DNA of 64,000 nt, taken from the NCBI RefSeq assembly GCF_006345805.1, contig NC_043010.1, positions 60,326,001 to 60,390,000 on the forward strand, given 5' to 3'. The DNA is from Octopus sinensis. Lineage: Eukaryota. The notes under the pieces were generated by a model. It saw nothing but the letters and a program-made list of their open reading frames with translations. It did no database searches and was not told the origin of the DNA. How positions within the stretch are numbered: the first letter of the stretch is position 1; each line of letters opens with the position of its first letter. The position numbers and the translations under genes were made by a program. This document shows, one piece after another, positions 2,297-60,812 of this stretch.

Positions 2297-2517
2297 GTAT
2301 CTGGGCAACAAATCCATTTTTCAAATGTTGTTTAATGCTTTTGCTTTTAATATTTATTCACTTCATTATTCCTTATATCACCATATCATCATATAATTTA
2401 ATAAGAGCTGTAGAGTGTACAATGTAGAATGTAATCTCATATGAAATCATCATAAACTCATAATAGTGTACACTAACTGTCAAATGTTTATCTAAAGCTT
2501 TGTTATTTCAACAGCAG

Positions 2518-3180: not shown

Positions 3181-3890
3181 TAAACTCAAAATAAACACAA
3201 TTCTAACTCTTTGCTTTGGAGATTATTAAAGTTTCCTTGCATTTAATATTAATAAGGCAACAGAATCAAAACATAGCTTCTGCTTTAAAATAAAGTAAAA
3301 TTAATTTGAAAATACAGAATAATGTAATTTCAACTAATATAGCTAAATTTATACATTAATAATATGTATTTGTAAATATTTTCCTTCAAACTGTAACTCA
3401 AGAATAAACAAATTAGTTCATTCAAATTCATAAATATCATAATTTAATTTGGACATATACTAAGCCAAAATATTCAAAAGATGGGGTAAAATATTTTGAA
3501 TTTCCTCTAGTATATTAAAAGTACAGTTTGTGTTTACCCTGCAAAAAAAGAAATGTTGTCAGAAAATATATAAATATAAAAACAAAAGTACAAGAAAACA
3601 TTTACTCCAAAATTCTACAATTTTTACAACCACTTATACTAGTCACTAATAATATACTATCACAGGTTAATGAATAAACAATAGAATGGTCAAAATAAAA
3701 TTGCAAAATGTCTATAATTTTTATGTAATTACAATAATTATTCTCCAGTTCAATCCACTACAATATGTACCATTAAATTACCATTGAAATGAGAAATTGG
3801 TATTTTACTTATTGCAATACACAATGTGTAAACATGAGCATATAAATTAGGTTGTCATAAGCATACATATACAAGTAGAATGTAATACTT

Positions 3891-3950
3891 GTGTGTGTGT
3901 GTGTGTGTGTGTGTGTGAGTGCACATGCGTGTTTGTGTGCGCGTGTGTGT
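3891..3950. repeat. (GT)n microsatellite, imperfect
   Basis: Direct inspection. Confidence 0.95.
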
Positions 3951-4083
3951 GCATACGTACATATTCATGTACTTTAAAATAAATTAGAGCTATTGTAAAA
4001 TTAATTATAAAATATTTCAGCCATTGTTTAAAATAATTTAAACAAATTCATTATGCACCAAACATAGATTCTTTAAAGAGTAG

Positions 4084-4218
4084 TTGGCTCCTATTTGACT
4101 CACAAACCTACACCATCAGGATACTGCAATTGTCACACTACTACAGCAGCAGTTACACTGGAACACTACACAATAATGTCTTCTATAAGAGGCCCAAACA
4201 AAGGATTTCTCAATAACA
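4084..4218 (+). other. Conserved exon-like cassette X1 (candidate alternative coding exon of P1 and/or 5'UTR exon of P2)
   Basis: tag| ... ACA|GTAAGT; 135 nt; open in phase 1 (VGSYLTHKPTPSGYCNCHTTTAAVTLEHYTIMSSIRGPNKGFLNN); homologues at 15775, 29875, 46588 and 55301. Confidence 0.6.
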
Positions 4219-5170
4219 GTAAGTCGTTTTGCAATTTTACATTAAATATTTTAGTAATACATATTTGAATATTGTGATATGATGTGATAAATTGAAAATA
4301 AATAATAGTGTGTTTCATGGTAATATATATAAACTACACCACAGAGTGCCATAGATAGGTCTAGCCATTACTAAAAGTAATTACTACAGCAGTAGTATCG
4401 TTTCTATGAGAAGATAGATATTTTATCGACAACTATTATGTTAATACTCATCTCTGTCAGCCAATTGTGTTTAATTAAATATTTTCATATATACTGACAC
4501 ATTTCTTAATATGATTTAATGATATAATATTGTTATAATTGAGAATATTGAATGGATGCTTGCAACATCTTATTTCTCTCCACTGAAATGGAGTACTAGA
4601 TATCTATATATTAGATCATATAAGATTTTCTAGTATATTATTCAAATTTTGGGATATATAAATAATGAAATACTGTATATCACTGCCAATATATTATTAA
4701 AATACCCTCACTATATTTACCATAAATATACCTATAATAAATTTAAAATTTTTATATTTCCTTGATATTTATAATATATTTATATTTATTATATTATATT
4801 TTTAGTTCTTTTCATTTTGGTCATATGCAAATTTAAGTTTTCTAGTTTTTCAACTTTGGTTAAATGAAACCATCATCTGTAACAGGCATTTCTTATTATT
4901 TTATTCACACTCTTATGAAGTAATTATGAATTGTGAGTATGTATACATGTATAACATGTATATGCATATGCATACATACATATATGTAATAATCGTTTGG
5001 TTATATTAGTTATACATTCCAAAAGAACATTAATAAATATTATTATATTATTATACCACTACTACCACTTAATCTCGGGTGAATTTTATTTGGAAGCAGA
5101 AATCTACATATTGTCAAACATTTAGACTGTATTTTGGATATTTATAAAAATTCTACCAAACCAAGATACA

Positions 5171-6244: not shown

Positions 6245-6720
6245 ATGGATGAGACAGAAAGTGTCCTCTAGCACTACAACACTATTAATCCTTGTGGTAC
6301 TTTGTCACCTCCTTTTTGAAGTTCAGCATCCATCACTTTATAAAACCTCTTTCTTCCACAGGTTCCATCTACATAGAGCACTCAGCACTTCTTTACAGGG
6401 CTGTTAGTCTCTATAAGCACCACAAGTCTGTACCAGCACAAGCTTCTCTCTTGCACCTTAAATCTGATTTTTATTATAACCAGTTTTTCTCTCAAATCAT
6501 TTGTGTTCCACAATTCATGCTCATTCACATAACACAAGTAGTAGTGCATACTGTATTTATTTCTAGTCTTCATAAATCGTTTTATGTCAGAACCCTTATG
6601 TTCACTACCATGCAGTACTGCAATTCATATACCAGCATAATACAATCTGCCCTTCACTCTACAAGAACTCGTTTGTTGCCAGCAGAGATAATAGCTCCCT
6701 AAATTTTTTCCATCATGTTC
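6245..6720 (-). mobile_element. RTE-type LINE 3' fragment
   Basis: Minus peptide LREKLVIIKIRFKVQERSLCWYRLV...SPVKKC resembles the RTE C-terminus; related to segments at ~24740-24930, 48060-48500 and 49940-50330. Confidence 0.7.
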
Positions 6721-7997
6721 TTCTTCAGATTCTACTATGCCTTGTATACACTCACCTCTACTACAAATTAGGTCATCTTGGTAATGAAAACTATTAACTA
6801 CTTTTAGGAAGCCTCCCATGTATTTGAAAGAGTTGGTTTTTGTGTGTATTATTACCACTAATTATTTATGTGCCTCCACCACAAACAAAGCCTACGTTCC
6901 CTGTGATCCCATTACATCTTTTGTGCATCCATAGTTTACACTGAGTACAGCATACAAATTTACAATCTGCTATACTGAGTAAGTGCAGCCTTTTTGTGTG
7001 AGTGTGTGTATGTGTGTGAACATTGCACTGGCTACTTTTCTATATGCTTGGTAAATCTTTAGCCTTTGTTGAATTCATTTCGAGGTCACTGAATGTTGTT
7101 TACAGACCTAGGAAGCACATTTTCACATATTTTTTTGTATCTCAGCTAACATGGGACCTTCTTCAAACTTTTATTAACGTAAGAAAAAGAAGGAAATATT
7201 CAAAATATTAGAAGGGGGAATAACTCTATTGTTTTTAATAGTTATCATAGAAAATATATTGGCTGCCACAAATTTGAAAAGCTTCATAAATATATCTTGG
7301 AGACCAAGGGATTAACTACTGAATTTATTTTGCAACACTATATCGTCCAACAAGAATTGTAAGTGTCAATAATTATGTTTACTTTGAAATGGTGTAAAGC
7401 TAAGTTGAAAGAGTATCCAAGAATAGGGCGAAGACATAAATTAGTACTTTTTAAAAATCAGCTCTGTAAGTTGGTTGATATAAAAACTTTTAAATTAAAC
7501 CTTTTGATGAATAATCTGAGACAATGACAGATATTTTTTAAAATCTAATCTGACTACAGATATAGGATGATATAAAAAGGAAAAGCTCAAGTGAGCTTTA
7601 TATAAGAATCAATTCAAATTGTTGATTCATTTACTATATGGTACACAACACCAGGTCCTCATTGCACACTTTCTATATCCATTTATACAATTAGTTTTAA
7701 AAATTAAGTAATGTATAAAGTGTTGACAAAACATTTTATGGAATTTGGTTTAGTCTCTCAGTTCAATTCCAGATCAATTCCGACAATGGCTGACATTACT
7801 TTAATTTCACCTGAGTTAATAACTTAACAACTAATTTTCATCAATTATATTACAGAAGTTACTAAACATTATGGATTAGTAAGTTTCTCATATTTTTCAT
7901 CTCTCAGTTTAAACTATCTATAATTTTCATATAGTTAACATTTCTATATTAGATTGTATGATTCAATTAACAAGCTCTCTTTTCTTTTTAAATTTAG

Positions 7998-8030
7998 ATA
8001 AATATTTATGAAAGATAATGAATAACAACA
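7998..8030 (+). promoter_or_regulatory. P2 spliced 5'UTR portion: 3' splice site upstream of ATG, with short uORF (8008-8025)
   Basis: tttctttttaaatttag| at 7997; equivalent acceptors end at 21366, 35545, 50477 and 58380. Confidence 0.65.
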
Positions 8031-11990: not shown

Positions 11991-13926
11991 GATAAACTTC
12001 TTTCTCTGTTGATTATTCCTTACCACAACCCACCTTTCCTAGAAAGCACTACAATTTTTCCAGTGCTTATCAACAGACAATCTTTTGTATTGTTTTTATC
12101 ATGCAAAATATTTTACCATTTTTATTTTGGAAACCACCATTTTCTCCTCAACAACTTTTTTTCATTAATTTCATTAAATTTGTTTGAAAAGTAATATGCC
12201 TTGTCACCTATTTATTTCAGATGTGTTCCTCAATTGCTTTCTTCCATTTGATCATAAGTCTAATCAACTGACTGTCATCTCTATAACTGGTCTTTCCCTG
12301 TTAACCAATTCTCATCCTAATTTATACATTGCTCTTTCACAAACCATTTTCCTCTAATGAACATAATAACAGATTATATTAAAATCATTTGCCTTAAGTT
12401 CTTTTCATATATAAAATAATAATTCATATTTATGAAAATATAAAGTATGACCAGGATACAGTCAAGTATTTTGCTCTTACAGAAACTCAGATAAATTTTG
12501 AGAATTTAGAAATTAAACTTTCTTTTTAAACAAAAGGTAACTTATTGGTATTTTAGCTAAGATCAAAGGATACTTATCAATTTCAAAATCTTTAATCACA
12601 GTACATACATGTGTAGGCATGTGTAGGTGTCACTATAAACACAGAGTGTAAGGTGGAAGTTTTCACTGTGATTAGTCTTGGGGATGGGAATACATTTTCT
12701 TGGGCTTCAATGACTATCTATATCTATCTGCATACAGATATATATGAATGTGTGTGTGTGTTTGTTTGTAACTACACATGGTCCATCAGTGATTTCTTCT
12801 TCTCCTCTTTCTTTGGACTTTTCCCTTTCTCATTTCTGATGGAGAGCAACACCTTTCTAAAATAAAAGACAATCACATGAAATAATGTGGTGCTGTAGTA
12901 TATTTTAAAAGCTGAATGCAATGTCTTTTATCTTTTGTCAATGATAATTGACTTGAGAGTAAAAAGCAACAACAAAACAATTAACAAGAAAAATATGACC
13001 ACTGCTACAGTTAACAATATCCACCATTATCATCACTACCAATACCAAGATCAATACAACCAATATCATCACCACTATCAAACAATGGCAGTAATTTTAT
13101 TCAGCTGAATACATGTCATTGATTGGTTGAAATTACTGAAATACGAGAAATTCAACACAAAATAACTTTGTAAACATAAACTTTTCTGAAAAAAAGAGAA
13201 GAGTAAAAGTTGTTTTATATGACACATTCTACCAGTATACGAAGTTTGAAAGTTTTCAGTTACAAAAAATTACTTTTTAAATCTGTAGGTCAAAAGGTAA
13301 AGGTCTAGAAACCTCATTAAGTCAGAATGTTCAATTAAAATACTTTATGTCCATATCAAATTTCTAGACTTCAGCTCATATTATATACCAGGACACATCG
13401 TATTGCATCGTGCTATCTTCAATTAAACATTAACGTGTTACATCTGAATCACTGGGTCTATAAATTTTAACAAGTCATTTTTCTTATCAAATTTAATCAA
13501 CCTTGAAGTACAGCACAAAATCACTGAAATATAACTTTCATCATAGCAGTATATAAGTTCAATATAATGTAGGTTATTACCATATTCTGAGGAATGCCAC
13601 CCTTCATGAATATGTGTTTATTTCAGAACTACTTTTTAGAATTCATGACAATGCTTCCCACACAAAACTTATCTAGTTGATCAGCTCTTCAATTAAAAAA
13701 ATCACAGAGTTCAGTTACCTTAATTATCTAAATTTATTCATTATCAAAATTTAAATAGGCAAAATTATGTATTTCTATGTATTATCTATTAAAATTTCCT
13801 ACTTGTTTGAGCAATATTTCTTCAATTGGTTCTTTAATATAATTTAAAATGTACTTAATAAAAATGTAATACTGTGTAATCTAATATCTTAAATATATGA
13901 CTGAGTCCTTGTTCTTTCATTGACAG

Positions 13927-15774: not shown

Positions 15775-15906
15775 TTGGCTCTCTGTATGACTCACAAATC
15801 TACACCATCAACATACTGCCCTTGTCAAACTACTACAGCAGCAGTTACACTGAAACACTATGCAATAATGTCTTCTATTGGAAGCACAACGGATTAAACA
15901 ATGTAG
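15775..15906 (+). other. Exon-like cassette X2
   Basis: tag| ... GTAG|GTAAGT; 132 nt; open in phase 1 (VGSLYDSQIYTINILPLSNYYSSSYTETLCNNVFYWKHNGLNNVG). Confidence 0.6.
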
Positions 15907-16779
15907 GTAAGTCATATTACATTGCAATTTCTCATTTGATATTTTGTTCATATTTTAGGATATTGAAGCATGAGAAATGGATACTAATATATTTAATAAT
16001 GATAATATATTCAAGCAAGGAAATAGGAAGCCATGGAATTATGTAGCCATTACCAAAATCTATTGCTATTGAAGTAGGATAGTTACTATGTGAAAGTAGA
16101 TATATTTAACAGCAATCATTATGTAAATACTAGACTGTCAGTTAACTGTATTTTACTTCATATTTTTCATACATATTACTATATTTCATTAAAATTATTA
16201 ATTCAAATATTTCTATAAATCAGTTTAAATAGGCAATATTTATTAACCTTTGAAAATGTCTTATTTCTTTCTATTTAAATAGAATATTGAATCAAATGCA
16301 TAACAAAATATGCATGGACTGCTAGTCTCAAAGAATATAATTTCATTTTAGAATTTAGTTTCTCTGTCAACAAATTCAGAGTCTGTGTTTTGATTCCTTA
16401 TTGCAAGTTTTTATTAATTTTACAAATAACCTCAAGGAAGACATTCATGTTTAAAACTAAAAATATTATTCAGTTATTTCTTTTATTCTTAATTACAAAA
16501 TACATATTTTCTAAACTTATTTTGATATCTTTAAAATTTATTCTTATCAAGAAAACAGAATCAATTATATAAACATCTGTATCACTGTAAATATATATAA
16601 TTAAAATAACTATGTATATAAATGAAAATATATGTTCATACACTCGGTGAATCATTGCACTTCATTGTACAAAGACAAGCATCACTAACGAAGTAAAAAT
16701 CGTCATTTGCAGTAAATGCAAGTTATTTTTTATCCCATTTTTAATAAATAATGATGATAAGCAAATATAACTAACAATT

Positions 16780-18299: not shown

Positions 18300-20290
18300 A
18301 AAACTGAGCACTAAGTTGGAATCAATTGAAGTTGTTTCAGGTTTCCTCTTCATACAATTTCCTCTGCCTTGAAATTTAGAATTTAAGAAGTGTATAGCAA
18401 CCAATCCTGAAGTAAGGTGTTCTGGAAATATGTGTGTTCAAAGCAGAGACCTCACTCTCCAGTTGGTCCTCTTCGCAATCTCCAAACAAGCCAGATTACT
18501 GACGATCCCAAAGAATGCACAGAACTCATTGCTGATTGCTATGCAGGCATTTGTATTGTCGAAAACCAAAACGTACCATCTCCACCACCTCTGATATAAA
18601 ATTCCATAACAATTATGGAATTTGCACCTGCAATACTGCAACGTCACCTTAAGAATAAGCGCAACTATGCCTCTCCTGGTCTTCATGGTGTTATCTACCT
18701 GCTTCTCAAACGTAGTGGGTACTTTCTTCTGCACCAGCTTTCACTCTTCTTTCAGTTATGTCTTAACAATGGTGCTACTCCTGAGCAGTATCATTCCTCT
18801 GTTCAAAAAGGGTGACAGAACGTCACCTGTCAACTATCATCCTGTCAGTCTTGCTAACTGCATTGCCAAACTGATGGAATCCTATGTCAGAGAAGCACTC
18901 TGGAACTTCTGGAATTCTCACAGCCTTATCCAGCCCTCGCAATTTGGATTTATCCCTAACTCCAGCTGCTGTGATCAATTTATCATTTTTTTTAAAGATA
19001 TCACCCAGATCCCTAATGGTGGCACGTGGGAGGATGTTGTTTACCATGACATTCCTAAAGCTTTTAATTCTGTGCCACAAAAAAGACTTATGGCAAAACT
19101 CTCTGCAATTGGTGTGAAAGATGATCTTTTTAACTGGTTGGGCTCCTTCATCCTCAGCTGAAAAGAGGTAGTCACAGTTCTAGGGCAGCATTCTTCCCCC
19201 TATAACGTGACATCTAGTGTACTGCAAGGTTCTGTTCTTGGTCCCGTTTTGTTTGTTACATACATTAATGACATATTAAAGGCAACTTAAAGAATGCCAC
19301 CATGCTGAAATATGCAGATGACATCAGGCTGTACCTTGAGATAAAAAGTACAGGTCCTGGGCACTATAGATCTTTCATGCAATCAGACCTGACACAACGC
19401 AACAATGGATCATGGACTAGCAACTCAAACTGGCTGTGGAAAAGTGTTCCACCATGCATTTTTGGAGGAAAAACCCAACGTCCACATACTTTCTCTACAA
19501 CACTAATATCAAGAAGTCTTCTTGTGAATGTGATCTGGGCATTAGTCAGCAGCAATTTGCACTGGGCGAAGCACATCTCTAAAATTGACAAGAAGGCTGA
19601 GGGTGTCTTGGCATCACTCAGCAAGACGTTTGTCAGCTGCTCTCCAGCTATCTATTTAAGACTGTATATGGCTATGGTGTGGCCACACTTGGAATTTGCA
19701 TCACTAGTCTGGAACCCCTATCTTCGTCAGAACATTGACCTCCTGGAAAATGTTCAGAGATGTGCTACCAAGCAATTGCCTTCCATCAGACATTGACCAT
19801 ACTCTGAATTCCTTGCTTCCCTGGGCATAGATACATTGAAGCTCCGATGTCTGGTAACTGACTGAGCAAACTCCCACAAAATTAATACCCATCATGCCAA
19901 CAACCACCTTAAGCACCTTTTTGAGCTCTATATATCTAACACAAATTGGTGTGTCTACAAAGTCAGAAAACAGCACAGCTCCCATGACTTTTGGAAACAT
20001 TTTTTCAAACTCAGAGTTTCTGAAGCATGGAACAAATTACCTGCATCAACTGTTAGCTGCCAAGACATTGCATCCTTTAAGAACTCCATACTTCCTGAAC
20101 CTTGCCAATGCTACACCTGATATCCCCACCACTCCATACGTATGCACAAATGTACATCATGACTCTTACACTGTTCACTTCTCTGATTTTTGTATATAAT
20201 TCTATGTACTGTACATACACCTTTGATGAGTTGTAATTCACCTGAACACTATACACAATAATTTCATTATCATTATTATTACTATTAATA
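18300..20290 (+). mobile_element. Degenerate CR1/L2-group LINE (RT domain and 3' end)
   Basis: Fragmented frames give KGDRTSPVNYHPVSL, QFGF, YHDIPKAFNSVP, QGSVLGP, KYADD and HLEFASLVWNPY...LLENVQR; ATT-rich tail near 20265-20298. Confidence 0.9.
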
Positions 20291-21392
20291 TTATTAGTTA
20301 TATTGTTAAGAGACTTGACAGAACATTCAAGAGACCAAGTGACTACATAGATTATTTCACTTTGAATATCAACACAAAATATTTAAGTGAGAAAAAGTTA
20401 TCAAACTTTGTGCATATCCAGGTCTTAAAACTTTTTTCAATATTTACTCTGCATCATAGCTTTTAATACTGTATGACTTTATGTTTCCACCTCAAAGTTG
20501 CCCCATTAGCCTGCTGCTGCCAACTTTAATGCTGGGGAGATGAAGATTACTTATTTCTTCCATGCTTCATTTGAATGAAATATGAACATTCCACTAACAT
20601 ACACATATATAACCTGCATATGTATGTTTTATTGGATGGCTAATGACTTATCTAAGTTTACCTGCTCTTTGATAAGTTTTGTTATTCATCCTGCAGCTTA
20701 TCCAAAATCACCCTTCACACCATGCAAGTTTGGTGGAATTAACAGCTCTGTAGCCAACAACCTAATTATGAAACAAGTTGGACTGGGTTAGATATTGCCA
20801 GATGCACCCACAAGTGACCTAACATCAAATTCCATTTAACAGCTAAGTATGATAAATAGATGCAATGATAGTGTTTGAAAAATAATGTGTTTCTTTTACA
20901 TTATTTACAATCTGTAATTCAGTAATTTCAATCTTAGGAATAAGTTCATAATGAGAAAACTTTCATAAAAACTTCATAAAAGCAAATAGCACAGTTTATG
21001 TGTTAAAATCTCTTATTATGTCTAATTTTGGATATAGAGGCAATGCATTCTCAGTCTAATCACTTCATATATGTGAAGAGATAATTTTATTTACTATGAT
21101 TTAAATTTTTTTTATAATTAGGGAATATACTTCTATGTTGTACCAAGTATGGATTTTGCTTCATTCAGAAAACTGGCCACATGCACATATGAGACTATCA
21201 AAATTTTACTTCATTATTTCATAATGTTACAAACATTTCTAAATATTATTGATTATATTACATGATAAATGTTGTACACTTGATTTTAGTATACATATTT
21301 TCTCCATATTAATATTTGTGTATAATGACTGTTTGATTCAAGCAATGCCTTTTATATTCTTTTTAGATTTTGAGGTATATCCATGAATAATA

Positions 21393-23807
21393 ATGAATTA
21401 CAATAATGAGATGACAAGCAATACTTTGCAGTTTTACCTTTTCTATGGACTAATGTATTCTGTCATGTCGATAGACTACATTTACCATGTCAATGAAGAA
21501 GACAGTCCACACACATACATTGGAGATATTGCAGCTAACTCTAACCTATCAAATCCTCTTACACATCAACGGCTCACACTCATTACATTTACACAACTAC
21601 AGAGAACAGTATCAAGTGGTTCTCACTTATTTAATGTCACAAGCTTAGGAAAACTATACACTACTCAAACATTGGATGCTGAAAAACTTTGTGTTTACAA
21701 GAAAGAATGCTCTAGAACTGTTAAAGTAGCAGTAAGGAAAGAGGAAACATTTCTAAAGATATTAAACATTAAAATAATTATAGAAGATATTAATGATCAT
21801 CAACCAGAGTTCCCATCAAACAAAATAAAAATCAAATTCTATGAAACAGATGTGAAAGGATCAACAAAATCAATACCAAATGCTGTTGATAAAGACATTA
21901 GTCTTCCAAATTCTAAGATAATATATAAACTCAAAGATAAAAGCAAAAAATTCTCGCTCTCCATATTTAAAGAATCTGATGGAATAAATTTACTTAAAAT
22001 AATTCTAGAAGGAATGTTAGATAGAGAATTAAAAGACACATATATGTTACAGTTGATTGCAAGAGATGGGGGTTCTCCACCAAAAGAAGGTATTCTGAAC
22101 ATTGAAATATCTGTTATTGATGTCAATGATAACAGACCTACGTTTACACAAAAATTATATAATACCACCATCAGTGACACACATCATATATCTTCTCCTG
22201 TTTTTGTTTTATTGGCAACAGATTTAGATTCTGGTCAAAATGGAAATATTAATTATTTTTTACATAGAAATACAAATGAATATGATAAAAAGTATTTCAA
22301 ATTAAATCATAAATCTGGAGAAATCTTCATCAATGATAATTTCTTTAGAAATAAGGAAAGTAAATACCAGTTATACGTTGAAGCTAGGGATGGTGGAAAT
22401 CCTTCATTAAGCTCCATGTCAACGTTGATTATAAATGTAATTAACAATCAAAATAATGCTCCAGCAATAAATATAGATTTTATATCACCTTTAACAAAGA
22501 CTTCTACAGGTATTTCAGAAGCAAGTAAAATTGGGAGTTTTATAGCTTATGTTATGGTCATTGACACTGATAATGGGCCTAATGGACAAATTAAATGTAA
22601 TATTCACCATAAAATGTTCCAGCTTTCTAATATGGGTTCTAAAGAATATAAAATATTGGTGAAAGAACCTCTTGACAGAGAAACTATAGACCATTATGTT
22701 GTTTCTATTGTATGTCATGACATGGGATCACCTCCATTAAAGACTAAGAAACAGTTCTCTGTCAAAGTAACTGATGTCAATGATGTAGAACCACATTTTA
22801 CCAAAGAGACATTCCAATTCCTCACCTATGAAAACCAGAAAGTTAACTTCCCTATTGGCTTCATCAATGCTACAGACCCTGATCTTGGAGATGGAGGCCA
22901 ACTTACATATTCTATCATCAATGATAACAACAATGATAACATTCCTTTCCAACTGACAAAATATGGATTTATTTCTACATCACAACCAATAGATCGAGAA
23001 GTGAAAGACATCTATAATTTACAAGTTTTAGTCAAAGATAATGGAACACCTTCTCTGAACAACACTGCTAACATTCTTATTGAGATTCTAGATAAAAATG
23101 ATAATGCACCTTATTTCATCTTTCCTAACAATGACCCTTACAATCTAGATGTCCACTACCATCCACACAGTAAGAAGGACATCACAATTCTGAAAGCATC
23201 TGACAAAGACACTGGAAACAATGCTTTCCTCACATATGGAATACTGAGATCCAATGATAAAAACCTGTTTACAGTGAACTCACACACTGGTGTGTTATCT
23301 TTCTCTCGCACAGTTTACCAAAATGATGCAGGAACATATGAGCTGCAGTTTATAGTGAAAGACGGTGGTACTCCAGTTCAATCAGCAACAACTGCTATCA
23401 TACTAACACTGTTTGTTAGTAATGATACATCTCCAATGTTGACTGCTGTCCACTCACAGTCTGATAACAACCTGAATATGACTTGGATAATTATCATTGT
23501 AGCAGCAGCTGTAATACTATCTGTGGCTATTGTAGTGTCAATAACAATGTGTGTTTTCAAATGTATTAATCACTTCAATAATTCATCTGCAGAAAAAGAT
23601 AATCCAAAATTTCTCTCTCAGACTGAAATGAGACAAATTCTGTATCAGACAAACAATCCTGTTGCAATAACTCGGAATGCAGAAGAGATATTTAGCAGAA
23701 ATCTTCAGTCAATAAACCCTAAATGTTCATACTATCCAGAAATAGACCAGTTGACCAATGAATGGAACTACTCAACAACACCCAGAAAACTTCCACCAGT
23801 TCCACAG
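21393..23807 (+). CDS. Protocadherin P3, large exon (P4-like 5' end, P2-like 3' end)
   Basis: ORF 21393..23864 (ATG at 21411 also in frame); acceptor ends at 21366; donor CAG|GTACCT at 23807 (805 codons). Confidence 0.97.
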
Positions 23808-29874: not shown

Positions 29875-30006
29875 TTGGCTCTCTGTATGACTCACAAATC
29901 TACACCATCAACATACTGCCCTTGTCAAACTACTACAGCAGCAGTTACACTGAAACACTATGCAATAATGTCTTCTATTGGAAGCACAACGGATTAAACA
30001 ATGTAG
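29875..30006 (+). other. Exon-like cassette X3 (duplicate of X2)
   Basis: Same 132-nt sequence with the same AG/GT boundaries. Confidence 0.6.
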
Positions 30007-34470: not shown

Positions 34471-35571
34471 TATTAGTTATATTGTTAAGAGACTTGACAG
34501 AACATTCAAGAGACCAAGTGACTACATAGATTATTTCACTTTGAATATCAACACAAAATATTTAGGTGAGAAAAAGTTATCAAACTTTGTGCATATCCAG
34601 GTCTTAAAACTTTTTTCAATATTTACTCTGCATCATAGCTTTTAATACTGTATGACTTTATGTTTCCACCTCAAAGTTGCCCCATTAGCCTGCTGCTGCC
34701 AACTTTAATGCTGGGGAGATGAAGATTACTTATTTCTTCCATGCTTCATTTGAATGAAATATGAACATTCCACTAACATACACATATATAACCTGCATAT
34801 GTATGTTTTATTGGATGGCTAATGACTTATCTAAGTTTACCTGCTCTTTGATAAGTTTTGTTATTCATCCTGCAGCTTATCCAAAATCACCCTTCACACC
34901 ATGCAAGTTTGGTGGAATTAACAGCTCTGTAGCCAACAACCTAATTATGAAACAAGTTGGACTGGGTTAGATATTGCCAGATGCACCCACAAGTGACCTA
35001 ACATCAAATTCCATTTAACAGCTAAGTATGATAAATAGATGCAATGATAGTGTTTGAAAAATAATGTGTTTCTTTTACATTATTTACAATCTGTAATTCA
35101 GTAATTTCAATCTTAGGAATAAGTTCATGATGAGAAAACTTTCATAAAAACTTCATAAAAGCAAATAGCACAGTTTATGTGTTAAAATCTCTTATCATGT
35201 CTAATTTTGGATATAGAGGCAATGCATTCTCAGTCTAATCACTTCATATATGTGAAGAGATAATTTTATTTACTATGATTTAAATTTTTTTTATAATTAT
35301 GGAATATACTTCTATGTTGTACCAAGTATGGATTTTGCTTCATTCAGAAAACTGGCCACATGCACATATGAGACTATCAAAATTTTACTTCATTATTTCA
35401 TAATGTTACAAACATTTCTAAATATTATTGATTATATTATATGATAAATGTTGTACACTTGATTTTAGTATACATATTTTCTCCATATTAATATTTGTGT
35501 ATAATGACTGTTTGATTCAAGCAATGCCTTTTATATTCTTTTTAGATTTTGAGGTATATCCATGAATAATA

Positions 35572-46587: not shown

Positions 46588-46725
46588 CTAACTCCTACTA
46601 TGACTCACATTCTTCACCATTAAGATACTTCCATTGTCACCCTACTATAGCAGCAGTTATACAGGAACAGTATGGAAGAATCGATGTCTTCGAAAGAGGC
46701 ACAAACAAAGGATTAAACAATGTAG
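46588..46725 (+). other. Exon-like cassette X4
   Basis: tag| ... GTAG|GTAAGT; 138 nt; open in phase 1 (ANSYYDSHSSPLRYFHCHPTIAAVIQEQYGRIDVFERGTNKGLNNVG). Confidence 0.6.
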
Positions 46726-50330: not shown

Positions 50331-50517
50331 ATCATATTCCAGTTTGTTCAGTTTTTGTTTACAATGACAATATCAGAAGTTTTTAAAGCAATTTCCCAAA
50401 CTACAAATTTCATTTATCAGATTTAAATGTTTACATATGTTAATATAATTAAATCAACAAGGATTTTTTTTTTTTAGGTTTAAATACACATATGTACATG
50501 AATAATAATGAATTACA

Positions 50518-52922
50518 ATGATGATAATAATCAACATTCTAAAGTTTTACATCATCTGTGGATTGATGTACTCTGTTGTAATGGTGGATATTACATACCA
50601 TGTCAATGAAGAAGACAATCCTCACACCTACATAGGAGACATTGCAATCGATTCCAACTTAACAACACACTCATTCAAACATCAACAACACACTCTCATT
50701 ACTTTTACACAATTACAACGCTTAGTTGCAAGTGGATCTAACTTATTTAATATCACCAACTTGGGAAAACTTTACACTACTCAGACATTAGATGCTGAAT
50801 CACTTTGTACATATAAGAAAGAATGTTTCAAAGTGGTTAAAGTAGCAGTAAGGAAAGCAGAAACATTTATAAAGATATTGAAGATAAAAATAATTATAGA
50901 AGATATTAATGATCATCAACCAGAGTTTCCATCGAACCAATTAAAAGTCAAATTTTATGAAACAGATGGGAAAGGGTCAACAAAGTCAATACCAAATGCT
51001 GTTGATAAAGACATTGGTCTTCTCAATTCTAACATCACATATAAACTAATAGATAAAAGTAATAAATTTTCGCTACTTATGTTTAAAGGATTTGATGGGG
51101 TAACCCTACTGGAAATAACACTTGGGGAAAAATTAGACAGAGAATTTAAAAACATTTATACATTACAGTTGGTGGCCAAGGATGGAGGTTCTCCACCAAA
51201 AGAAGGAATTCTGAATATTGAAATACATGTTATAGATGTCAATGATAATCAACCACTTTTTAAACAAAAATCATATAATACTACCATCAGTGATACACAT
51301 CACATATCTTCCCCTGTGTTTCATATATCAGCTACAGATTTAGACTCTGGTCAAAATGGACATATTACTTACTATTTACATAGAAATACAAATAAACATA
51401 CCAAAAATAAGTTCAAATTAAATTCTAAAAGTGGAGAAATCTACATCAATGATAATTTCTTTAGAAATAAAGAAAGTAAATATCAGTTATATATTGAAGC
51501 TAGGGATGGTGGAAATCCTTCATTAAGCTCCATGACAATGCTGATTATTAATGTTATTAGCAATCAAAATAATGCTCCAGCAATAAATATAGATTTTGTA
51601 TCACCTTTAACAGAGAGCTCTACTGCTGTTTCAGAAGCAAGTAAAATTGGAAGCTTTATAGCTTATGTTATGGTTACTGACACTGATAGTGGACCTAATG
51701 GACAAATAAATGTAATATTCATCATAAAATGTTTCAACTTTCTAATATGGATTCTAAAGAATATAAAATATTGGTGAAAGAACCTCTTGACAGAGAAACT
51801 ATAGACCATTATGTTGTCTCTATTGTATGTCATGACATGGGATCACCTCCATTAAAGACTAAGAAACAGTTCTCTGTCAAAGTAACTGATGTCAATGATG
51901 TAGAACCACATTTTACCAAAGAGACATTCCAATTCCTCACCTATGAAAACCAGAAAGTTGACTTCCCTATTGGCTTCATCAATGCTACAGACCCTGATCT
52001 TGGAGATGGAGGTCAACTTACATATTCTATCATCAATGATAACAACAATGATAACATTCCTTTCCACCTGACAAAATATGGATTTATTTCTACATCACAA
52101 CCAATAGATCGGGAAGTGAAAGACATCTATAATTTACAGGTATTAGTCAAAGACAATGGAACACCTTCTCTGAATAACACTGCTAACATTCTTATTGAGA
52201 TTCTAGATAAAAATGATAATGCTCCATATTTTATTTTTCCTAATAATGACCCTTACAATTTAGATGTCCACTACCATCCACACAGTAAGAAGGACATCAC
52301 AATTCTGAAAGCATCTGACAAAGACACTGGAAACAATGCTTTCCTCACATATGGAATACTGAGATCCAATGATAAAAACCTGTTTACAGTGAACTCACAC
52401 ACTGGTGTGTTATCTTTCTCTCGCACAGTTTACCAAAATGATGCAGGAACATATGAGCTGCAGTTTATAGTGAAAGATGGTGGTACTCCAGTTCAATCAG
52501 CAACAACTGCTATCATACTAACACTGTTTGTTAGTAATGATACATCTCCAATGTTGACTGCTATCCACTCACAGTCTGATAACAATCTGAATATGACTTG
52601 GATAATTATCATTGTAGCAGCAGCTGTAATACTATCTGTGGCTGTTGTAGTGTCAATAACACTGTGTGTTTTCAAATGTATTAATCACTTCAATAATTCT
52701 TCTGGAGAAAAAAATAATCCAAAATTTCTCTCTCAGACTGAAATGAGACAAATTCTGTATCAGACTAACAATCCTGTTGCAATAACTCGGAATGCAGAAG
52801 AGATATTTAGCAGAAATCTTCAGTCAATAAACCCCAAAAGCTCATATTATCCAGAGATGGAACAATTAGCCAATGAATGGAAATTCTCAACAACACCCAG
52901 GAGACTTCCACCAGTTCCACAG
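50518..52922 (+). pseudogene. Protocadherin P5 large exon with a 1-nt deletion (young pseudogene or sequencing error)
   Basis: ORFs 50518..51777 and 51729..52937 join if caaatAAAtgt (51708-51710) is restored to the AAAA seen in P2 and P6. Acceptor ends at 50477; donor CAG|GTATGT at 52922. Confidence 0.9.
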
Positions 52923-53854
52923 GTATGTCAACCATAAATCTACTTTTTACACATTATTTTTCTTCATTTGTGTTTATTAATTTAAATATTTCTGTTTGAT
53001 TTGTATATTAATTCTAAGAAAAGAATGAGTAAGTGGTAATGTTGATTATATCTTCCCAGTTCTTTACTGGAATGACTTTATGAACCATAGTGCATTAAAA
53101 GTTGACACTGTCATGATTTAACTAAATAGTGATTTGTCAATTCCCCTGTCTACTGTCCTCATAATTGTCTAATAGTACAATTTATTTGCTTTTTGTTTTT
53201 TGCTAGAAAGCTCTCTTTTTCTGCTTTTGTTGTTGTTAAACTTAGGTCCAGACATGAATGAACAAACCTACAATCTAATTTCCATTTATAACAGTTCATC
53301 TCTTTTTTTTTTTTTAAGGAAATTTTGTATCTAAGACAACATTGTCCTCAACCAAATGTGTACTTGTACTTCTAACATGGCAGGTAGTGATTTGAGGAAG
53401 ATTTACTTACTATTTCTAATAGATCAAACAATCTCATTGGAGTTTCCAATTGGTTTCAAATTTTCTAATGAACAATTATGATGTGCTAAAAACCATGAAT
53501 ACAAATACTCCAAATTTTAAATTCTCATATAAAATCAATTTAAGTCTTGTCCATATAAACTTACTGGAACAAACTCCAGTTGTTTCTGTTCAAAACCCAC
53601 TAAAAATGAAAGTAGTACCTTAAAAAATCTCAGTTTATTTCAGAGGTATTTCATAAATTCAGAACCATATTATACAGAGCTACTGCTTTAGCAACCATGT
53701 TTTAATTAGTTCAAATATATTACAAAATTTATTAGATTTAACAGAATTCAGATTAGTTTTTCTGGTAAGATATAAAACATAAGTCATTGAAATAAAACAG
53801 TGAGAATCATAACCTCCCAAATACACATGTAAATCTTTGGCATTTCATTGACAG

Positions 53855-55300: not shown

Positions 55301-55423
55301 GCATCTTCTATGACTCACGAATCTGCACTAACAAGATGCTACTGTAGCAGCAGTTATACTGGAACACTACGCAAGAACAGATGTCTTCTATAAGAAGCCC
55401 AAACAAAGGATTAAGTAATGAAG
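55301..55423 (+). other. Exon-like cassette X5 (acceptor lost, frame broken, donor retained)
   Basis: TATGACTCAC, gcagcagttatactgg and caaacaaagga conserved; homologous AG reads AT; in-frame TAG; GAAG|GTAAGT intact. Confidence 0.55.
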
Positions 55424-58412
55424 GTAAGTTGCTTTATAGTTCATATTCTCAATTAATATTTTCGTAGTATATAGTTGATAGTGAGGTATAATAACCTGAT
55501 AAAATCTAGAAAGTCTGTTATGAGAATTATATAAAGAAACTTGCCATTAACTATTGCATTACCAAAAAACAATTATTGCAGCCATTTATTTAATGAAGAT
55601 AGTTACTGCAGTATATTCACTTCAATGAAAATACTTCTAGCAGTGCCATTGCACAAATACTGATTAGAAAATTTATATTTGTTTACTTATCTAATGTTAT
55701 TTATAAAATTATTTTGTAAATTTGGACAACTGAAAATTGTTTTATTAATTTTCACAAATGTTGATAATTAAGCACAGAGATGTCACTCAATTTATATTTA
55801 GCGGCTAGTAAAAAATTTAGATATACAATAGTACATGTTCATTTAAGCCTCAGATTTTTCTGTGAGAAGAATCTGTTATTTCTTCCTTTCTTCTTCATTA
55901 ATGCAGTTATTTCATTTGTAATCAATTTCCTTAAAGATATTAATGTCTCAGTTCCCAGTTACTATTCACTATAACTTGGTGAGGAGGGATTCTTGACTGA
56001 TATAGAAATTATCATTATGCATATCTCTAATGATACAAACTTAAATATCTAAAGAAATACATCACTATAAATATTTTGTTAAAATATAATATGAATCAAT
56101 TACTTTCACAAAAATTATTCTCCTCTTGTTAAAAAACAACAACAACCTATATAGATGATTAAACTGATATAATTATATTATTACAGAGATGTACTTGCAT
56201 AGCAAATGACTTGATCTAAGATTGTTGTACAGAATTTTGTCAGTGAACAGGTTACAGGTTCAAAGTGATGAAAATATTTTCCCAAATTATATTTAAATGT
56301 TGAAGTGAATCTAACGGTTTTTGTGTGTTTTTAAATGGCTTATAAACACCTTCTATACTGCAATTATATTATTGCTGTTAGTTTATTTTCCTTTAAAAAC
56401 GTTGATTTAATCCAGTGACACAAAATTATATGCTGTAAAGCATTTAGTCTATGTTTGTATTACACAAGCAAATGTTAGCAACCAAGGATTCTTAATAATC
56501 TACCATTTTTACTGTGTATTGACTATATGTCTTTCATCCTACATGCAGGGGATATAAAAACCAAAGTCATTAGATTAGTAATCATATTTCCAAGTACTCA
56601 CTATCCCAGCATTTAAAGAAAATATAGCAACTGCTACAATAGTCTCTAAACAGTTCCTTAAATCAAAAAGAAAGTATGCCAGTCCAACATAAGTCCTTCC
56701 ACCCACCCAATTTGTCTTCATATTCCTAAAAAAAAATTAAACTCTTACAAAACCTGCAATATATGCTTTGCAGTTCATCATAGGATGCACACATATCATG
56801 CATTGAAGATTTGTTCAGCAGAACAACCACATTATATAAAGGTATTTCAATTTCAGCAAACAATGGCAATAATACTGAGCTGTATTAGTTAAATCACCTC
56901 AAATATTTCAGTATAAAGTATAAATGAATGGAAGTGTTAGGAAATATACAGAGATAACAAGGGAAATAACTCTGTGGTTTTCAAATGTTACACCTAATTT
57001 ATACAGATAAGATACCAGTTTTTCCACAGCTTGTTTCAGCACTACTTTTTTTAAAACCTGGCATAATTAAAAGCAAACACATGAATTTCTTACAACTCAC
57101 CAGACCAATACATTGGGTGACCACTATTGATATTTGGAGTCATTTGAATTCGCATGAATATCTAAATATTCTGCCGATTCAGGGGACTTTGCTTCCAAGC
57201 ACAATTTAAGTGTCAGGGTGGGGCAAAGTGTAAGTACATGTCCACATCGATGTGGATAAGATAGAAGTAATGAGAGAATTGGACCATGGTTTTTTTGCTT
57301 TAGATATATGATATTGGTTAATCAGCTGCATATAATGTGTGAAAGAAAGGAAGGAAAATAATGCAATTCTTCACAGAAAGTGCTTCTCAGAAGTAAATAA
57401 ACATTCAGGCCAATGATATGAATCTGCATTGCTCCTAAAGTTTCTGTACCCAGATCACTTGGATGCATGGTGTTTGGCAAATCTAGTTTCAACCCCAGTA
57501 GTTATGAGTGCTGCAATGGCTATCTTGTATTCAAGACATTAAACATATCAAACAGAGTAGGTGTATTCTTGAAAGAAATTTACTTACGCACATCATGTAT
57601 AGTGACTGCCTATAAGCATTCTCACAGACTAACTGTGAAATATTTTTGTATGAAACAAGTTAATAAAGTCAACTTGTAACATTATTTCAGTAATTACAAT
57701 TGAATTGTACAATTTTGGGGCAATAATTGAACTCAATCAATGGCAATTTGAAAGTTAGCAATGCTTTTATGTTTTGTCAAAAATCTGTGCAGCAGTAATT
57801 TCTTGAGTGAAAAAAAGTTGATTGCACCACTGTATAACATGAGCAACAAATGCAGTTTCTTTGCTGAGTTTATTCAGTTTTTTTTATCATTCTTCCCTCC
57901 AATGTAGCCTTACTGGCATCTCATTGTCAATTAAATCTCTCCCATGTAACAACTCTATTGTGTAGTGCTTGTTTTCTCTTTGATGAATGTCTAATATTCT
58001 GCAAGATACAGCAGTCTAAAAAATACTATTTCTATTGAAAACATAAATAACATAAATTGACAAGACATGGAAATTCAATTTGGGCAGCCAGTTATTCATT
58101 TTTGTGAGATATGTTATGATTTAAACTATTGGCAAAATGTTAAGTATGAAATCTGTACCCTGGGAAGAAGTCTTGTGAAAAAAATCTGCTGATTCATTAC
58201 TCCTTTTGTTTTAAGTTTTACCTCAATTTATTGCCTATTTTACCTTGTTAAAAATTTATCAAAATTCATACATATGGTGATAATTGAAATATGACAAGCT
58301 TTAAAGCAACATCAATACTTAAATGTAAATTTCAACAAAAATTCTATGATTAAATTCGAAATTTTCTTCTTTTATTTAAGTAATATGGATTCAAGAACAA
58401 TGAAATAAAACA

Positions 58413-60812
58413 ATGATTGGAAATAATATTTTACAATTTTACATTTTGCATGTTTGGATAAAAGCAGTCATAGCTGTAGATATTTCATACTATATCAATG
58501 AAGAAGACAGTCCTCACACCTATATAGGAGACATTGCTGTTGACTCCAACTTATCACACCCTCTCAAACATGAGCAACGCACTCTCATTACATTTACACA
58601 ACTACAAAGGACAGTCGAGAGTGGTTCTCAATTATTCAATGTCACCAACTCAGGAAAACTCTACACTACTCAAACACTGGATGCTGAGTCTCTGTGTACA
58701 TACAACAAGGAATGTTCAAGGATTCTTAAGGTTGCAGTGAGGAAAGCAGAAACGTTCATAAAAATATTAAAGATAAAAATATTAATAGAAGATATCAATG
58801 ACCATTCACCAGAATTTCGAGATGATCAAATAAAAATACAATTTGATGAAACAGATGCAAAAGGATCAACAAAATCAATACCAAATGCTGTTGATAAAGA
58901 CATTAGCCTTCTAAATTCTAAGATTACATATAAACTGAAAGACAAAAGTAAGAAATTCTCACTATCCATATTTAAAGGGTTTGATGGAGTAAACTTACTT
59001 AAAATAACCCTAGAAGAAATGTTAGACAGAGAATTAAAAGACACTTATACGTTACTGTTGATGGCTAAAGATGGTGGCTCTCCACAAAAAGAAGGTTCTT
59101 TGAAGATAGAAATCTCAGTTACAGATGTCAATGATAACCAACCAATGTTTACTCAGAAATCATATAATATTTCCATCAGTGATACACATCACAAATCTTC
59201 TCCTGTTTTTGTTTTATCAGCAACAGATTTAGATTCTGGCCAAAATGGGAATGTTACTTACTATTTACATAGAAATACAAATAAATATGCCAGAAAACAT
59301 TTCAAATTGAAGAGTAAATCTGGAGAAATTTTCCTTAATAATAATTTCTTAAGTAATAAAGAAAGTAAATACCAACTATACATTGAAGCCAGAGATGGTG
59401 GAAAACCATCTTTAAGTTCTACAACAATATTAATTATTAATATAATTAACAATCAGAATAATGCACCAACAATAAATATAGATTTTGTATCTCCACTAAC
59501 AAAAACTTCTACTGCTATTTCAGAAGGAAGTAAAATTGGAAGTTTTATAGCTTATGTTATGGTCATTGACACCGACAGTGGGCGTAATGGACAAATAAAA
59601 TGTAATATTCATCATAAAATGTTCCAGCTTTCCAATATGGGTTCTAAAGAATATAAAATATTGGTGAAAGAACCTCTTGACAGAGAAACTATAGATCATT
59701 ATATTGTTTCTATTGTATGTCATGACATGGGATCACCTCCATTAAAGACTAAGAAACAGTTCTCTGTCAAAGTAACTGATGTCAATGATGTAGAACCACA
59801 TTTTACCAAAGAGACATTCCAATTCCTCACCTATGAAAACCAGAAAGTTGACTTCCCTATTGGCTTCATCAATGCTACAGACCCAGATCTTGGAGATGGA
59901 GGCCAACTTACATATTCTATCATCAATGATAACAACAATGATAACATTCCTTTCCAACTGACGAAATATGGATTTATTTCTACATCACAACCAATAGATC
60001 GAGAAGTTAAAGACATTTATAATTTACAGGTATTAGTCAAAGACAACGGAATGCCTTCTCTGAATAACACTGCCAACATTCTTATAGAGATTCTAGATAA
60101 AAATGATAATGCACCTTATTTCATCTTTCCTAATAATGACCCTTACAATCTCGATGTCCACTATCATCCACACAGTAAGAAGGACATCACAATTCTGAAA
60201 GCATCTGACAAAGACACTGGAAACAATGCTTTCCTCACATATGGAATACTGAGATCCAATGATAAAAAGCTGTTTACGGTGAACTCACACACTGGTGTGT
60301 TATCTTTCTCTCGCACAGTTTACCAAAATGATGCAGGAACATATGAGCTGCAGTTTACAGTGAAAGACGGTGGTACTCCAGTTCAATCAGCAACAACTGC
60401 TATCATACTAACACTGTTTGTTAGTAATGATACATCTCCAATGTTGACTGCTGTTCACTCACAGTCTGGTAACAACCTGAATATGACTTGGATAATTATC
60501 ATTGTAGCAGCAGCTGTAATACTATCTGTGGCTGTTGTAGTGTCAATAACAATGTGTGTTTTCAGATGTATTAATCACATTAATAATTCACCTACAACAA
60601 AAGATAATCCAAAATTTCTCTCTCAGACTGAAATGAGACAAATATTGTATCAGACCAACAATCCTGTTGCAATAACTCAGAATGCTGAAGAGATATTTAA
60701 CAGAAATCTTCAGTCAATAAACCCCAAAAGTCCATATTATCCAGAGATGGAACAATCAGCCAATGGATGGAAATTCGCAACAACACACAGAAGATTACCA
60801 TCACTTCCTCAG
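58413..60812 (+). CDS. Protocadherin P6, large exon
   Basis: ORF 58413..60842; acceptor ends at 58380; donor CAG|GTAAGT at 60812 (800 codons). Confidence 0.97.

Follow-up and report, generated by a model that had tools for sequence, protein, structure and literature searches.

In the window, i.e. the whole 64-kb stretch of Octopus sinensis DNA analyzed here, six protocadherin (Pcdh) genes, P1 to P6, lie head-to-tail on one strand as a tandem array, and a conserved block that we call X is found 0.75-1.3 kb past exon 3 of each of the first five (copies X1 to X5), with GTAAGT right after every copy (Table 1). The block is real and is conserved far beyond chance; it has a donor with partner acceptors downstream, and it lacks both an acceptor of its own and coding constraint. 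Comparison of its copies within the array and across species suggests that X is probably the untranslated first exon, together with promoter-proximal sequence, of the next Pcdh gene downstream. Transcription of each gene would then begin at the 5' edge of X or close to it, and a leader of roughly 120-135 nt would end in a near-perfect U1-complementary donor, (A)G|GTAAGT, to be joined over a 3-9-kb intron to a strong acceptor 25-45 nt before the ATG. The spliced leader would be non-coding and rich in short upstream ORFs, with one conserved upstream ATG. The binders and the role that we propose below for the motifs within X are likewise putative.

Each gene consists of a 2.4 kb exon encoding the ectodomain and transmembrane segment, an exon 2 of 151 nt, which leaves 1 base over and so sets the phase, and a terminal exon 3. 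Exons 2 and 3 are present in every unit, each unit with its own stop codon, and the tail encoded by the terminal exon, ...DTYLEP(I/V)YKK, is conserved from Octopus to Argonauta. The spliced model of P2, of 879 aa, shares 98% identity with a protocadherin of O. vulgaris, and the DNA of the window is 98-99% identical to the O. vulgaris chromosome OX597827.1. The exon-1 ORF of P6 is intact, although X5, upstream of it, is degenerate at its 5' edge.

The copies of X are 80-86% identical between paralogues, X1 against the others included, which is the same level as that of coding exons 2 and 3 (83-88%), while in the flanks of X the column identity drops to 20-55%. Within the intergenic regions of 4-7 kb, only X and about 200 nt on either side are consistently alignable between paralogues. 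When a 13.6-kb O. sinensis unit was compared with the Argonauta locus, exons 1, 2 and 3 aligned, as did X over 15776-15913, and the only other non-coding alignment was one marginal 36-nt match. X2 aligns to three Argonauta copies, with a sharp 5' edge of conservation at 15776; Argonauta belongs to the Argonautidae and Octopus to the Octopodidae, which are separate families of Incirrata. We searched Pcdh loci of related species and paralogue subfamilies with a profile of X and found a single copy for each gene unit, always on the strand of the gene, in the window (5/5), in O. vulgaris (3/3), in Argonauta hians (3/3) and in O. bimaculoides (8/8). Recognizable copies also occur in more distant subfamilies, two in an O. 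sinensis subfamily of 70% identity and three in an O. vulgaris subfamily of 54% identity. No X-like block was present in the 15-kb gene or the 10-kb flanks of a distant Argonauta paralogue that lies on a different contig (L005), so X is tied to the sampled tandem arrays and not to every Pcdh. The strongest conservation lies in internal motifs rather than at the edges of the block, and conservation falls about 40 nt past the invariant consensus donor. In all copies X lies 0.5-1.9 kb from the upstream stop and 2-9 kb from the next ATG. This spacing, tighter to the upstream stop than to the downstream ATG, would also suit an element of the 3' end of the upstream gene.

The five blocks and their GTAAG donors had been located in a first-pass annotation of this DNA, and the sequence bears out their positions. 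It also bears out the view that X2 and X3 are recent duplicates, as the two are identical over 132 of 132 nt, and that X5 has lost its acceptor and frame and kept its donor. X5 is without an AG at its 5' edge and has a 14-nt internal deletion, and it retains TGACTCAC, the core motif and the donor. Its O. bimaculoides orthologue, Ob_3, shows the same degenerate state, which must therefore be old.

Table 1. Positions of the X blocks, of their parts and of the proposed partner leaders in the window
Feature	Position	Strand	Description
X1	4084-4218	+	Proposed non-coding leader exon and promoter-proximal element of P2
TGACTCAC in X1	4096-4103	+	
Core AGCAGCAGTTACAC in X1	4145-4158	+	
Upstream ATG in X1	4176-4178	+	Conserved
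X1 donor	4218|4219	+	ACA|GTAAGT
X2	15775-15906	+	Proposed leader exon of P3; TGACTCAC at 15788-15795; donor TAG|GTAAGT
X3	29875-30006	+	Proposed leader exon of P4
X4	46588-46725	+	Proposed leader exon of P5; TGACTCAC at 46601-46608; donor TAG|GTAAGT
X5	55301-55423	+	Proposed leader exon of P6; TGACTCAC at 55311-55318; donor AAG|GTAAGT
P2 leader	7998-8030	+	33 nt; acceptor pyrimidine fraction 0.82; ATG at 8031; proposed partner of X1, intron 3.8 kb
P3 leader	21367-21392	+	ATG at 21393; proposed partner of X2, intron 5.5 kb
P4 leader	35546-35571	+	ATG at 35572; proposed partner of X3
P5 leader	50478-50517	+	Acceptor with T11 tract; proposed partner of X4
P6 leader	58381-58412	+	Acceptor pyrimidine fraction 0.88; proposed partner of X5

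The splice signals at the two edges of X are of very different quality. The pyrimidine fraction before the 5' edge is 0.35-0.47, as against a mean of 0.47 for 1,529 intergenic AGs and 0.53-0.88 for the 15 real acceptors of the window, which puts the weak polypyrimidine tracts that the first annotation had cautioned about at background level. The AG itself is missing from the 5' edge in X5, in all Argonauta copies, in the O. bimaculoides copies Ob_3 and Ob_8 and in the 70% and 54% subfamilies. The donor, on the other hand, is kept in all copies examined from the four species, as GTAAGT, GTAAGA, GTAAAT, GTATGT or GTCAGT. The form GTAAGT is found in 5/5 window copies, in 3/3 Argonauta copies and also in the O. 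vulgaris copies, and the X donor is closer to consensus than the coding-exon donors gtaact and gtacct. With a donor and apparently no functional acceptor, X has the look of a first exon.

The partner for such a donor is found in front of the coding exons. Among the Pcdh genes sampled (P2-P6, the Argonauta genes and the 70% and 54% paralogues), every ATG lies 25-45 nt past a polypyrimidine tract and AG, the pyrimidine fraction of these tracts being mostly 0.71-0.88. Since a strong acceptor precedes every ATG, each Pcdh must have an upstream untranslated exon, and the sole conserved donor between the stop of one gene and the acceptor of the next is that of X. The introns implied between X and the downstream leader are 3.0-5.5 kb in the window and reach 8-9 kb in the 54% subfamily. 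Spliced together, X and leader hold short upstream ORFs only, all of which end before or at the main ATG, and one of which begins at the conserved ATG. The reading frame that leaves X stops within 5-15 codons in the next leader, and we recovered the early stops listed previously for such joins (NKYL*, DFEVYP*). X is thus found with a consensus 5' splice site that is conserved in homologues, with a partner acceptor that shortly precedes the downstream start codon, with no 3' splice site at its 5' edge and with no coding constraint, as a non-coding first exon would be. Among the three models put forward in the first-pass annotation, the donor and the pre-ATG acceptors best support the one in which X opens the 5'UTR of the following gene as its first exon.

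That annotation had presented X as a frame-preserving cassette, and the observations behind this description are accurate: X1-X4 are directly preceded by TAG, measure 135, 132, 132 and 138 nt and are stop-free in phase 1, the phase left by exon 2, and ..AAVT.. is read in X1 and X4 where X2 and X3 give ..SSSY... An open frame of this kind is, however, within chance expectation. A single frame is open in 5-12% of dinucleotide shuffles of X and some frame is open in 11-30%; in 135-nt intergenic stretches of the window a given frame is open in 8.7% and some frame in 24%. Throughout X, and in the ancestral sequence as well, two of the three frames have hardly any stops, so indels readily leave an open path. 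We would see the stop-free frame of the O. sinensis copies as a by-product of an A/C-rich, T-poor sequence. X1 and X2 use different reading frames over about 75% of the exon, so that no X peptide is conserved.

Frame preservation also breaks down in orthologues, where lengths and stops vary, and with it fails the cassette model, for which the annotation had named just this comparison as a check. A 1-nt insertion brings the O. vulgaris X1 to 136 nt, with a stop at its end, and in O. bimaculoides the orthologous copy of X4 measures 139 nt and contains 2 stops. For Argonauta we count 2 stops in phase 1, which is interrupted in each of the three copies; any open frame that a copy has lies in another phase. 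The X2/X3 lineage alone keeps 132 nt and an open frame, in three species. Between O. sinensis and O. bimaculoides, X2 has 7 differences that change 6 codons, with 0 synonymous and 6 non-synonymous changes, and its divergence is 5.3% vs 4.7% in the flanks. Three X peptides were searched against 5.8 billion proteins and no representative scored; this search saw cluster representatives, and the models that contain X peptides sit in clusters headed by normal Pcdhs. Neither frame, nor length modulo 3, nor peptide is conserved in the way that an alternative coding cassette would be, and the conserved donor goes with an acceptor that is weak and not conserved. These comparisons indicate that X is not protein-coding and that coding constraint is absent from it.

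What appears to be conserved in X, then, is a set of short motifs. All 5 sites of TGACTCAC in the 64 kb are inside X (5/5), and its counterpart in the 54% subfamily is TGACGTG. The near-invariant core reads ..TTGTCACAC.A.TACAGCAGCAGTTAYAC.GGAACAC.., which can also be given as TTGTCACAC..ACAGCAGCAGTTACAC.GGAACAC, and in the 70% subfamily the core motif is tandemly repeated. An ATG, ACAAAGGATTAAACAATG.AG and the donor are the other invariant or near-invariant pieces. Such motifs are most likely array-wide transcription-factor sites or regulatory sites of a 5'UTR. We take TGACTCAC and TGACGTG to resemble an AP-1/CRE site, which may point to bZIP factors. By eye, the aligned X copies held no match to the vertebrate conserved sequence element (CSE) with its CGCT core and no CTCF-type motif like CCCTC/CCASYAGRKGGC, and TATA-like words 5' of X were indistinguishable from the AT-rich background. 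Resemblances to REST and CTCF sites were weighed and set aside as unconvincing. A scan of 3800-4500 with Rfam 15 returned nothing within X; sub-threshold matches to mir-297 and mir-466 fall on the (GT)n tract at 3896-3973 that neighbors X1. The consensus fold of seven X copies reached only -3.9 kcal/mol, with negligible covariation, and thus gave no structure.

X had been called unannotated, and this does not hold for public gene models, in which pieces of X0 and X4 are coding (P0121, O. sinensis) and X1 and X2 appear in models of O. bimaculoides and O. vulgaris, respectively. P0121 is a model of 5090 aa encoded by the window that chains six units. It runs from an exon 3 upstream of the window to an internal acceptor in X0, and from the X0 donor to the P1 acceptor (...RLNN|FEIMNYNN...). 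Further along, it leaves exon 3 of P4 via a split stop codon (TA|G), enters X4 at ...TAGCAG|CAGCAG and exits it via CAAT|GTAGGT, a site 4 nt short of the conserved donor, to land midway in exon 1 of P5. The O. vulgaris model P0001 ends in ...PPMPK-NRKHNGLNNV-DFEVYP, where a piece of exon 3 is followed by the final ~25 nt of X2 and these by the leader of P3, and holds the junction of X2 donor and P3 acceptor, ...GLNNV|DFEVYP*. Its C-terminus could not be rebuilt with canonical splice sites, as the step from exon 3 to X2 needs a GT..CT intron. In the old O. bimaculoides model P0129 (XP_014767705.1, 5758 aa), exon 2 of the P1 orthologue is joined in frame to X1, with the sequence ...GDIKNHIS|AHKPTPSGYCNCHTTTAAVTLEHYTIMSSLRGPNKGFLNN at the joint. 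Further chained models belong to other subfamilies (P0017, P0087, P0138), and P0121, P0125 and P0129 are among the giant chained models listed as 'uncharacterized protein'.

For entry into X the chained models rely on three separate internal acceptors, in differing frames, and none of them uses the TAG that precedes X1-X4; some of their splice sites appear to have been picked just to hold the ORF open, e.g. acceptors inside the next exon 1. Chained proteins of 4,000-5,800 aa with 5-6 ectodomains and internal transmembrane segments are biologically implausible. Judging from how they are built, these models look like read-through or annotation artefacts riding on the strong X donor. The junction of X donor and next acceptor is contained in two public models, P0001 and P0121, both of which are otherwise aberrant. 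The in-frame joining of exon 2 to X1 in P0129 counts against a reading of X as a leader only. The cluster membership lists, checked for transcriptome-derived entries, hold only NCBI, UniRef and EukProt entries.

These models bear on two other ways of reading X. It is possible, but on the whole we doubt, that X is also entered by read-through from the upstream gene via cryptic acceptors, which would be compatible with its serving as a leader; the conjoined transcripts would mostly stop early and would probably be degraded. Such chaining is suggested by predicted models in three species that link neighboring units through X, and is put in question by the fact that each model enters X at another position and frame, by sites as odd as CAAT|GTAGGT, the stop split TA|G and the acceptors inside the next exon 1, and by the implausibility of the multi-ectodomain products with their internal transmembrane segments. 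Of the earlier proposal that X serves both purposes and gives chained transcripts, the chaining is mirrored in the predicted models, but the differing entry sites and frames do not fit an exon designed for dual use. It is very improbable, by comparison, that X is a coding cassette, in which exon 2 would be spliced to X in frame, skipping the terminal exon, to give an alternative cytoplasmic tail and perhaps to continue to a distal shared exon. The lengths of X1-X4, divisible by 3 and open in the exon-2 phase, the X2/X3 lineage with its 132 nt and open frame in three species, and XP_014767705.1, in which exon 2 is joined to X1, are what such a cassette would predict. Yet its acceptor would have no pyrimidine tract and is missing in most homologues, a given frame is left open by chance in 5-12% of shuffles, and frame or length is broken in the O. 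vulgaris X1, in the O. bimaculoides orthologue of X4 and in Argonauta. Moreover, the peptides are frameshifted between copies over about 75% of the exon, X2 shows 0 synonymous against 6 non-synonymous changes, there was no protein homologue among the sequences searched, the canonical ...DTYLEP(I/V)YKK tail is conserved, and the frame after X stops within 5-15 codons. The distal shared exon that the first-pass annotation had envisaged is at odds with the conserved terminal exon that each gene has of its own and with the report that shared final exons play no part in the splicing of cephalopod Pcdhs (PMC9068888). By comparison with orthologues, the cassette seems largely refuted, from its acceptor to its frame, length and peptide.

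X may also be separated from the next gene altogether. As a DNA or RNA regulatory element of the 3' side of the upstream gene or of the whole array, unspliced to the next gene, it could be associated with a terminator, act as an insulator or enhancer, or bind U1 to control polyadenylation. The constant proximity to the upstream stop, compared with the 2-9 kb to the next ATG, and the concentration of conservation in internal motifs rather than at the edges would agree with this, but the drop in conservation about 40 nt past the invariant donor is the signature of an exon-intron boundary, and the pre-ATG acceptors need an upstream donor, of which there is no other conserved one; we regard such an element as improbable. 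The least probable of the readings considered, and hardly a credible one, would have separate RNA genes alternate with the Pcdh genes, X being either the first exon of such an independent non-coding RNA or a structured RNA gene in itself. X is conserved, non-coding and donor-bearing, as such a gene would require, but it has no Rfam match and a fold of just -3.9 kcal/mol with negligible covariation, and its donor would still need an acceptor, the sole conserved one downstream being that of the Pcdh leader.

Should X indeed supply the downstream gene with its first exon and promoter region, as we propose, the positions of octopus Pcdh promoters would be given, along with a short list of invariant motifs, and the leader exon could be used to mend the chained models in the annotation of three octopus genomes. 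The choice of Pcdh genes in vertebrates rests on a conserved element in each promoter, and octopus has 100-plus protocadherin genes for its neurons to choose among. By analogy, X might be an independently evolved octopod promoter/leader module of ~130 nt, the counterpart of the vertebrate Pcdh promoter element, serving neuronal Pcdh choice or regulation. It would place an AP-1/CRE-like site and the CAGCAGCAGTTACAC core before every gene of the tandem arrays, and could act through activity-dependent transcription or through translation controlled by upstream ORFs. Taken jointly, we consider these propositions unlikely. In a weaker variant, read-through splicing into X would give regulated alternative cytoplasmic tails. 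The idea that a vertebrate-like shared-exon or cassette mechanism is hidden in X finds no support in the sequences compared here. A leader followed by a 5'UTR intron would be functionally ordinary; it is the degree of conservation of this leader that appears unusual.

In our search of the literature, neither a leader exon nor a promoter motif came up for cephalopod Pcdh genes, and X is best placed by its likeness to known systems. Like ordinary non-coding first exons of animals, it is short, with a strong 5' splice site near the proposed transcript start and a multi-kb intron behind it, and as in ordinary genes with a 5'UTR intron, the acceptor lies tens of nt before the ATG and the leader is rich in upstream ORFs. 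Unlike ordinary leaders, X matches the coding exons in its conservation between paralogues, can be aligned from Octopodidae to Argonautidae and is common to subfamilies whose proteins are only 54% identical.

Each variable exon of the vertebrate clustered Pcdh genes has a CSE in its promoter (PMC7811963, PMC3333863). As with the CSE, there is one copy of the X motif per tandem Pcdh unit, always in the same orientation, and X would be a candidate handle for promoter choice in the array. In contrast to the CSE, which lies ~200 bp before the ATG, X would lie 3-9 kb before the coding exon, within or beside a separate leader that is spliced to it, and it has no sequence resemblance to the CSE and no CGCT core. 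The Pcdh expansions of octopus and vertebrates were independent (PMC9068888), so X would have arisen independently of the CSE. A consensus donor after each repeated Pcdh unit also recalls the splicing of variable to constant exons in vertebrates. However, the X donor follows a non-coding block and not an ectodomain exon as in the vertebrate variable exons, and the octopus genes, unlike the vertebrate clustered ones, keep their own exons 2 and 3 and their own stop. Within the window there are no units without 3' exons of their own and no shared constant exons, as would mark a locus of the vertebrate type; cephalopod Pcdhs owe their diversity to the duplication of whole genes rather than to splicing onto shared constant exons (PMC9068888). 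Finally, the giant models resemble those of conjoined or read-through tandem genes, where neighbors on the same strand are linked by cryptic splice sites. What sets them apart from the usual read-through is that the linker repeatedly passes through a conserved leader, whose strong donor is a natural stepping stone from one gene to the next.

The public O. sinensis model P0121 (5090 aa), which spans the whole window (1-64000), joins six protocadherin units of the locus as a single ORF. It includes an additional 87-nt exon at two places, puts acceptors inside exon 1 of P2, P3 and P5, and takes in parts, in two frames, of X0 and X4, two copies of the conserved block X that ends in a GTAAGT donor and is proposed as a non-coding leader exon of the next gene. 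Comparable giant models, of 4355 and 5758 aa, are found in O. bimaculoides, and in both species they look like chaining artefacts that mask the real genes.

Two of the units have a disrupted exon 1. Exon 1 of P5 is split into two overlapping ORFs, a sign of a frameshift; the O. vulgaris orthologue (P0002) is intact, at 861 aa. In P4, the ATG is present, yet the ORF is open only from a position further downstream. These defects mark either young pseudogenes or assembly errors. Exon 2 varies among the units, in that P1 has a NAGNAG tandem acceptor (acagCAG), while in P2-P5 the upstream AG is gone (ttgaCAG) and the downstream acceptor alone is therefore left.

Most copies of X in the window, and most X-like copies at other loci, end in ATG-NAG|GT. 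Splicing at this end would leave an upstream ORF that is either a bare start-stop pair (ATG TAG) or two codons long (ATG AAG|TAA). Some 45 nt 5' of the donor there is another conserved upstream ATG (ATGTCTTC), and in the 70%-identity subfamily of O. sinensis the core motif of X, ACTACAGCAGCAGTTACACAGGAACAC, forms 2-4 tandem repeats within the leader block. A (GT)n microsatellite lies 130-190 nt 5' of X, with equivalents before X2 and X3. It drew sub-threshold Rfam matches to mir-297 and mir-466, and microRNA genes at this tract were rejected, the matches being low-complexity.

Positions of features in the window and at related loci
Feature	Locus	Position
P1 exon 2 tandem acceptor	window	2511-2517
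(GT)n microsatellite	window	3890-3975
X ends with ATG-NAG|GT	window	15899-15906, 29999-30006, 46718-46725, 55416-55423
Extra 87-nt exon of P0121, within intron separating X from following gene	window	20696-20782 and 34875-34961
P4 exon 1: ATG; start of open ORF	window	35572; 36243
P5 exon 1; its two ORFs	window	50512-52937; 50512-51777 and 51699-52937
Core-motif repeats	O. sinensis subfamily (L003)	4094-4334, 20079-20400
Exon-1-tail fragment	O. sinensis subfamily (L003)	13522-13695
Partial exon-1-tail / exon 3 copies	Argonauta hians (L002)	6471-6722, 7007-7086, 22593-22846, 23145-23245
Unit without exon 1	O. bimaculoides (L006)	59073-62241

Incomplete pieces of the unit occur at other loci. 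In Argonauta hians, additional partial copies of the exon-1 tail and exon 3 lie between the stop of each gene and the next X, and a similar exon-1-tail fragment follows one gene of the O. sinensis subfamily. One unit of the O. bimaculoides array has exons 2 and 3 and a copy of X but lacks exon 1; it is a partial unit, the remnant of a deletion or of a partial duplication.
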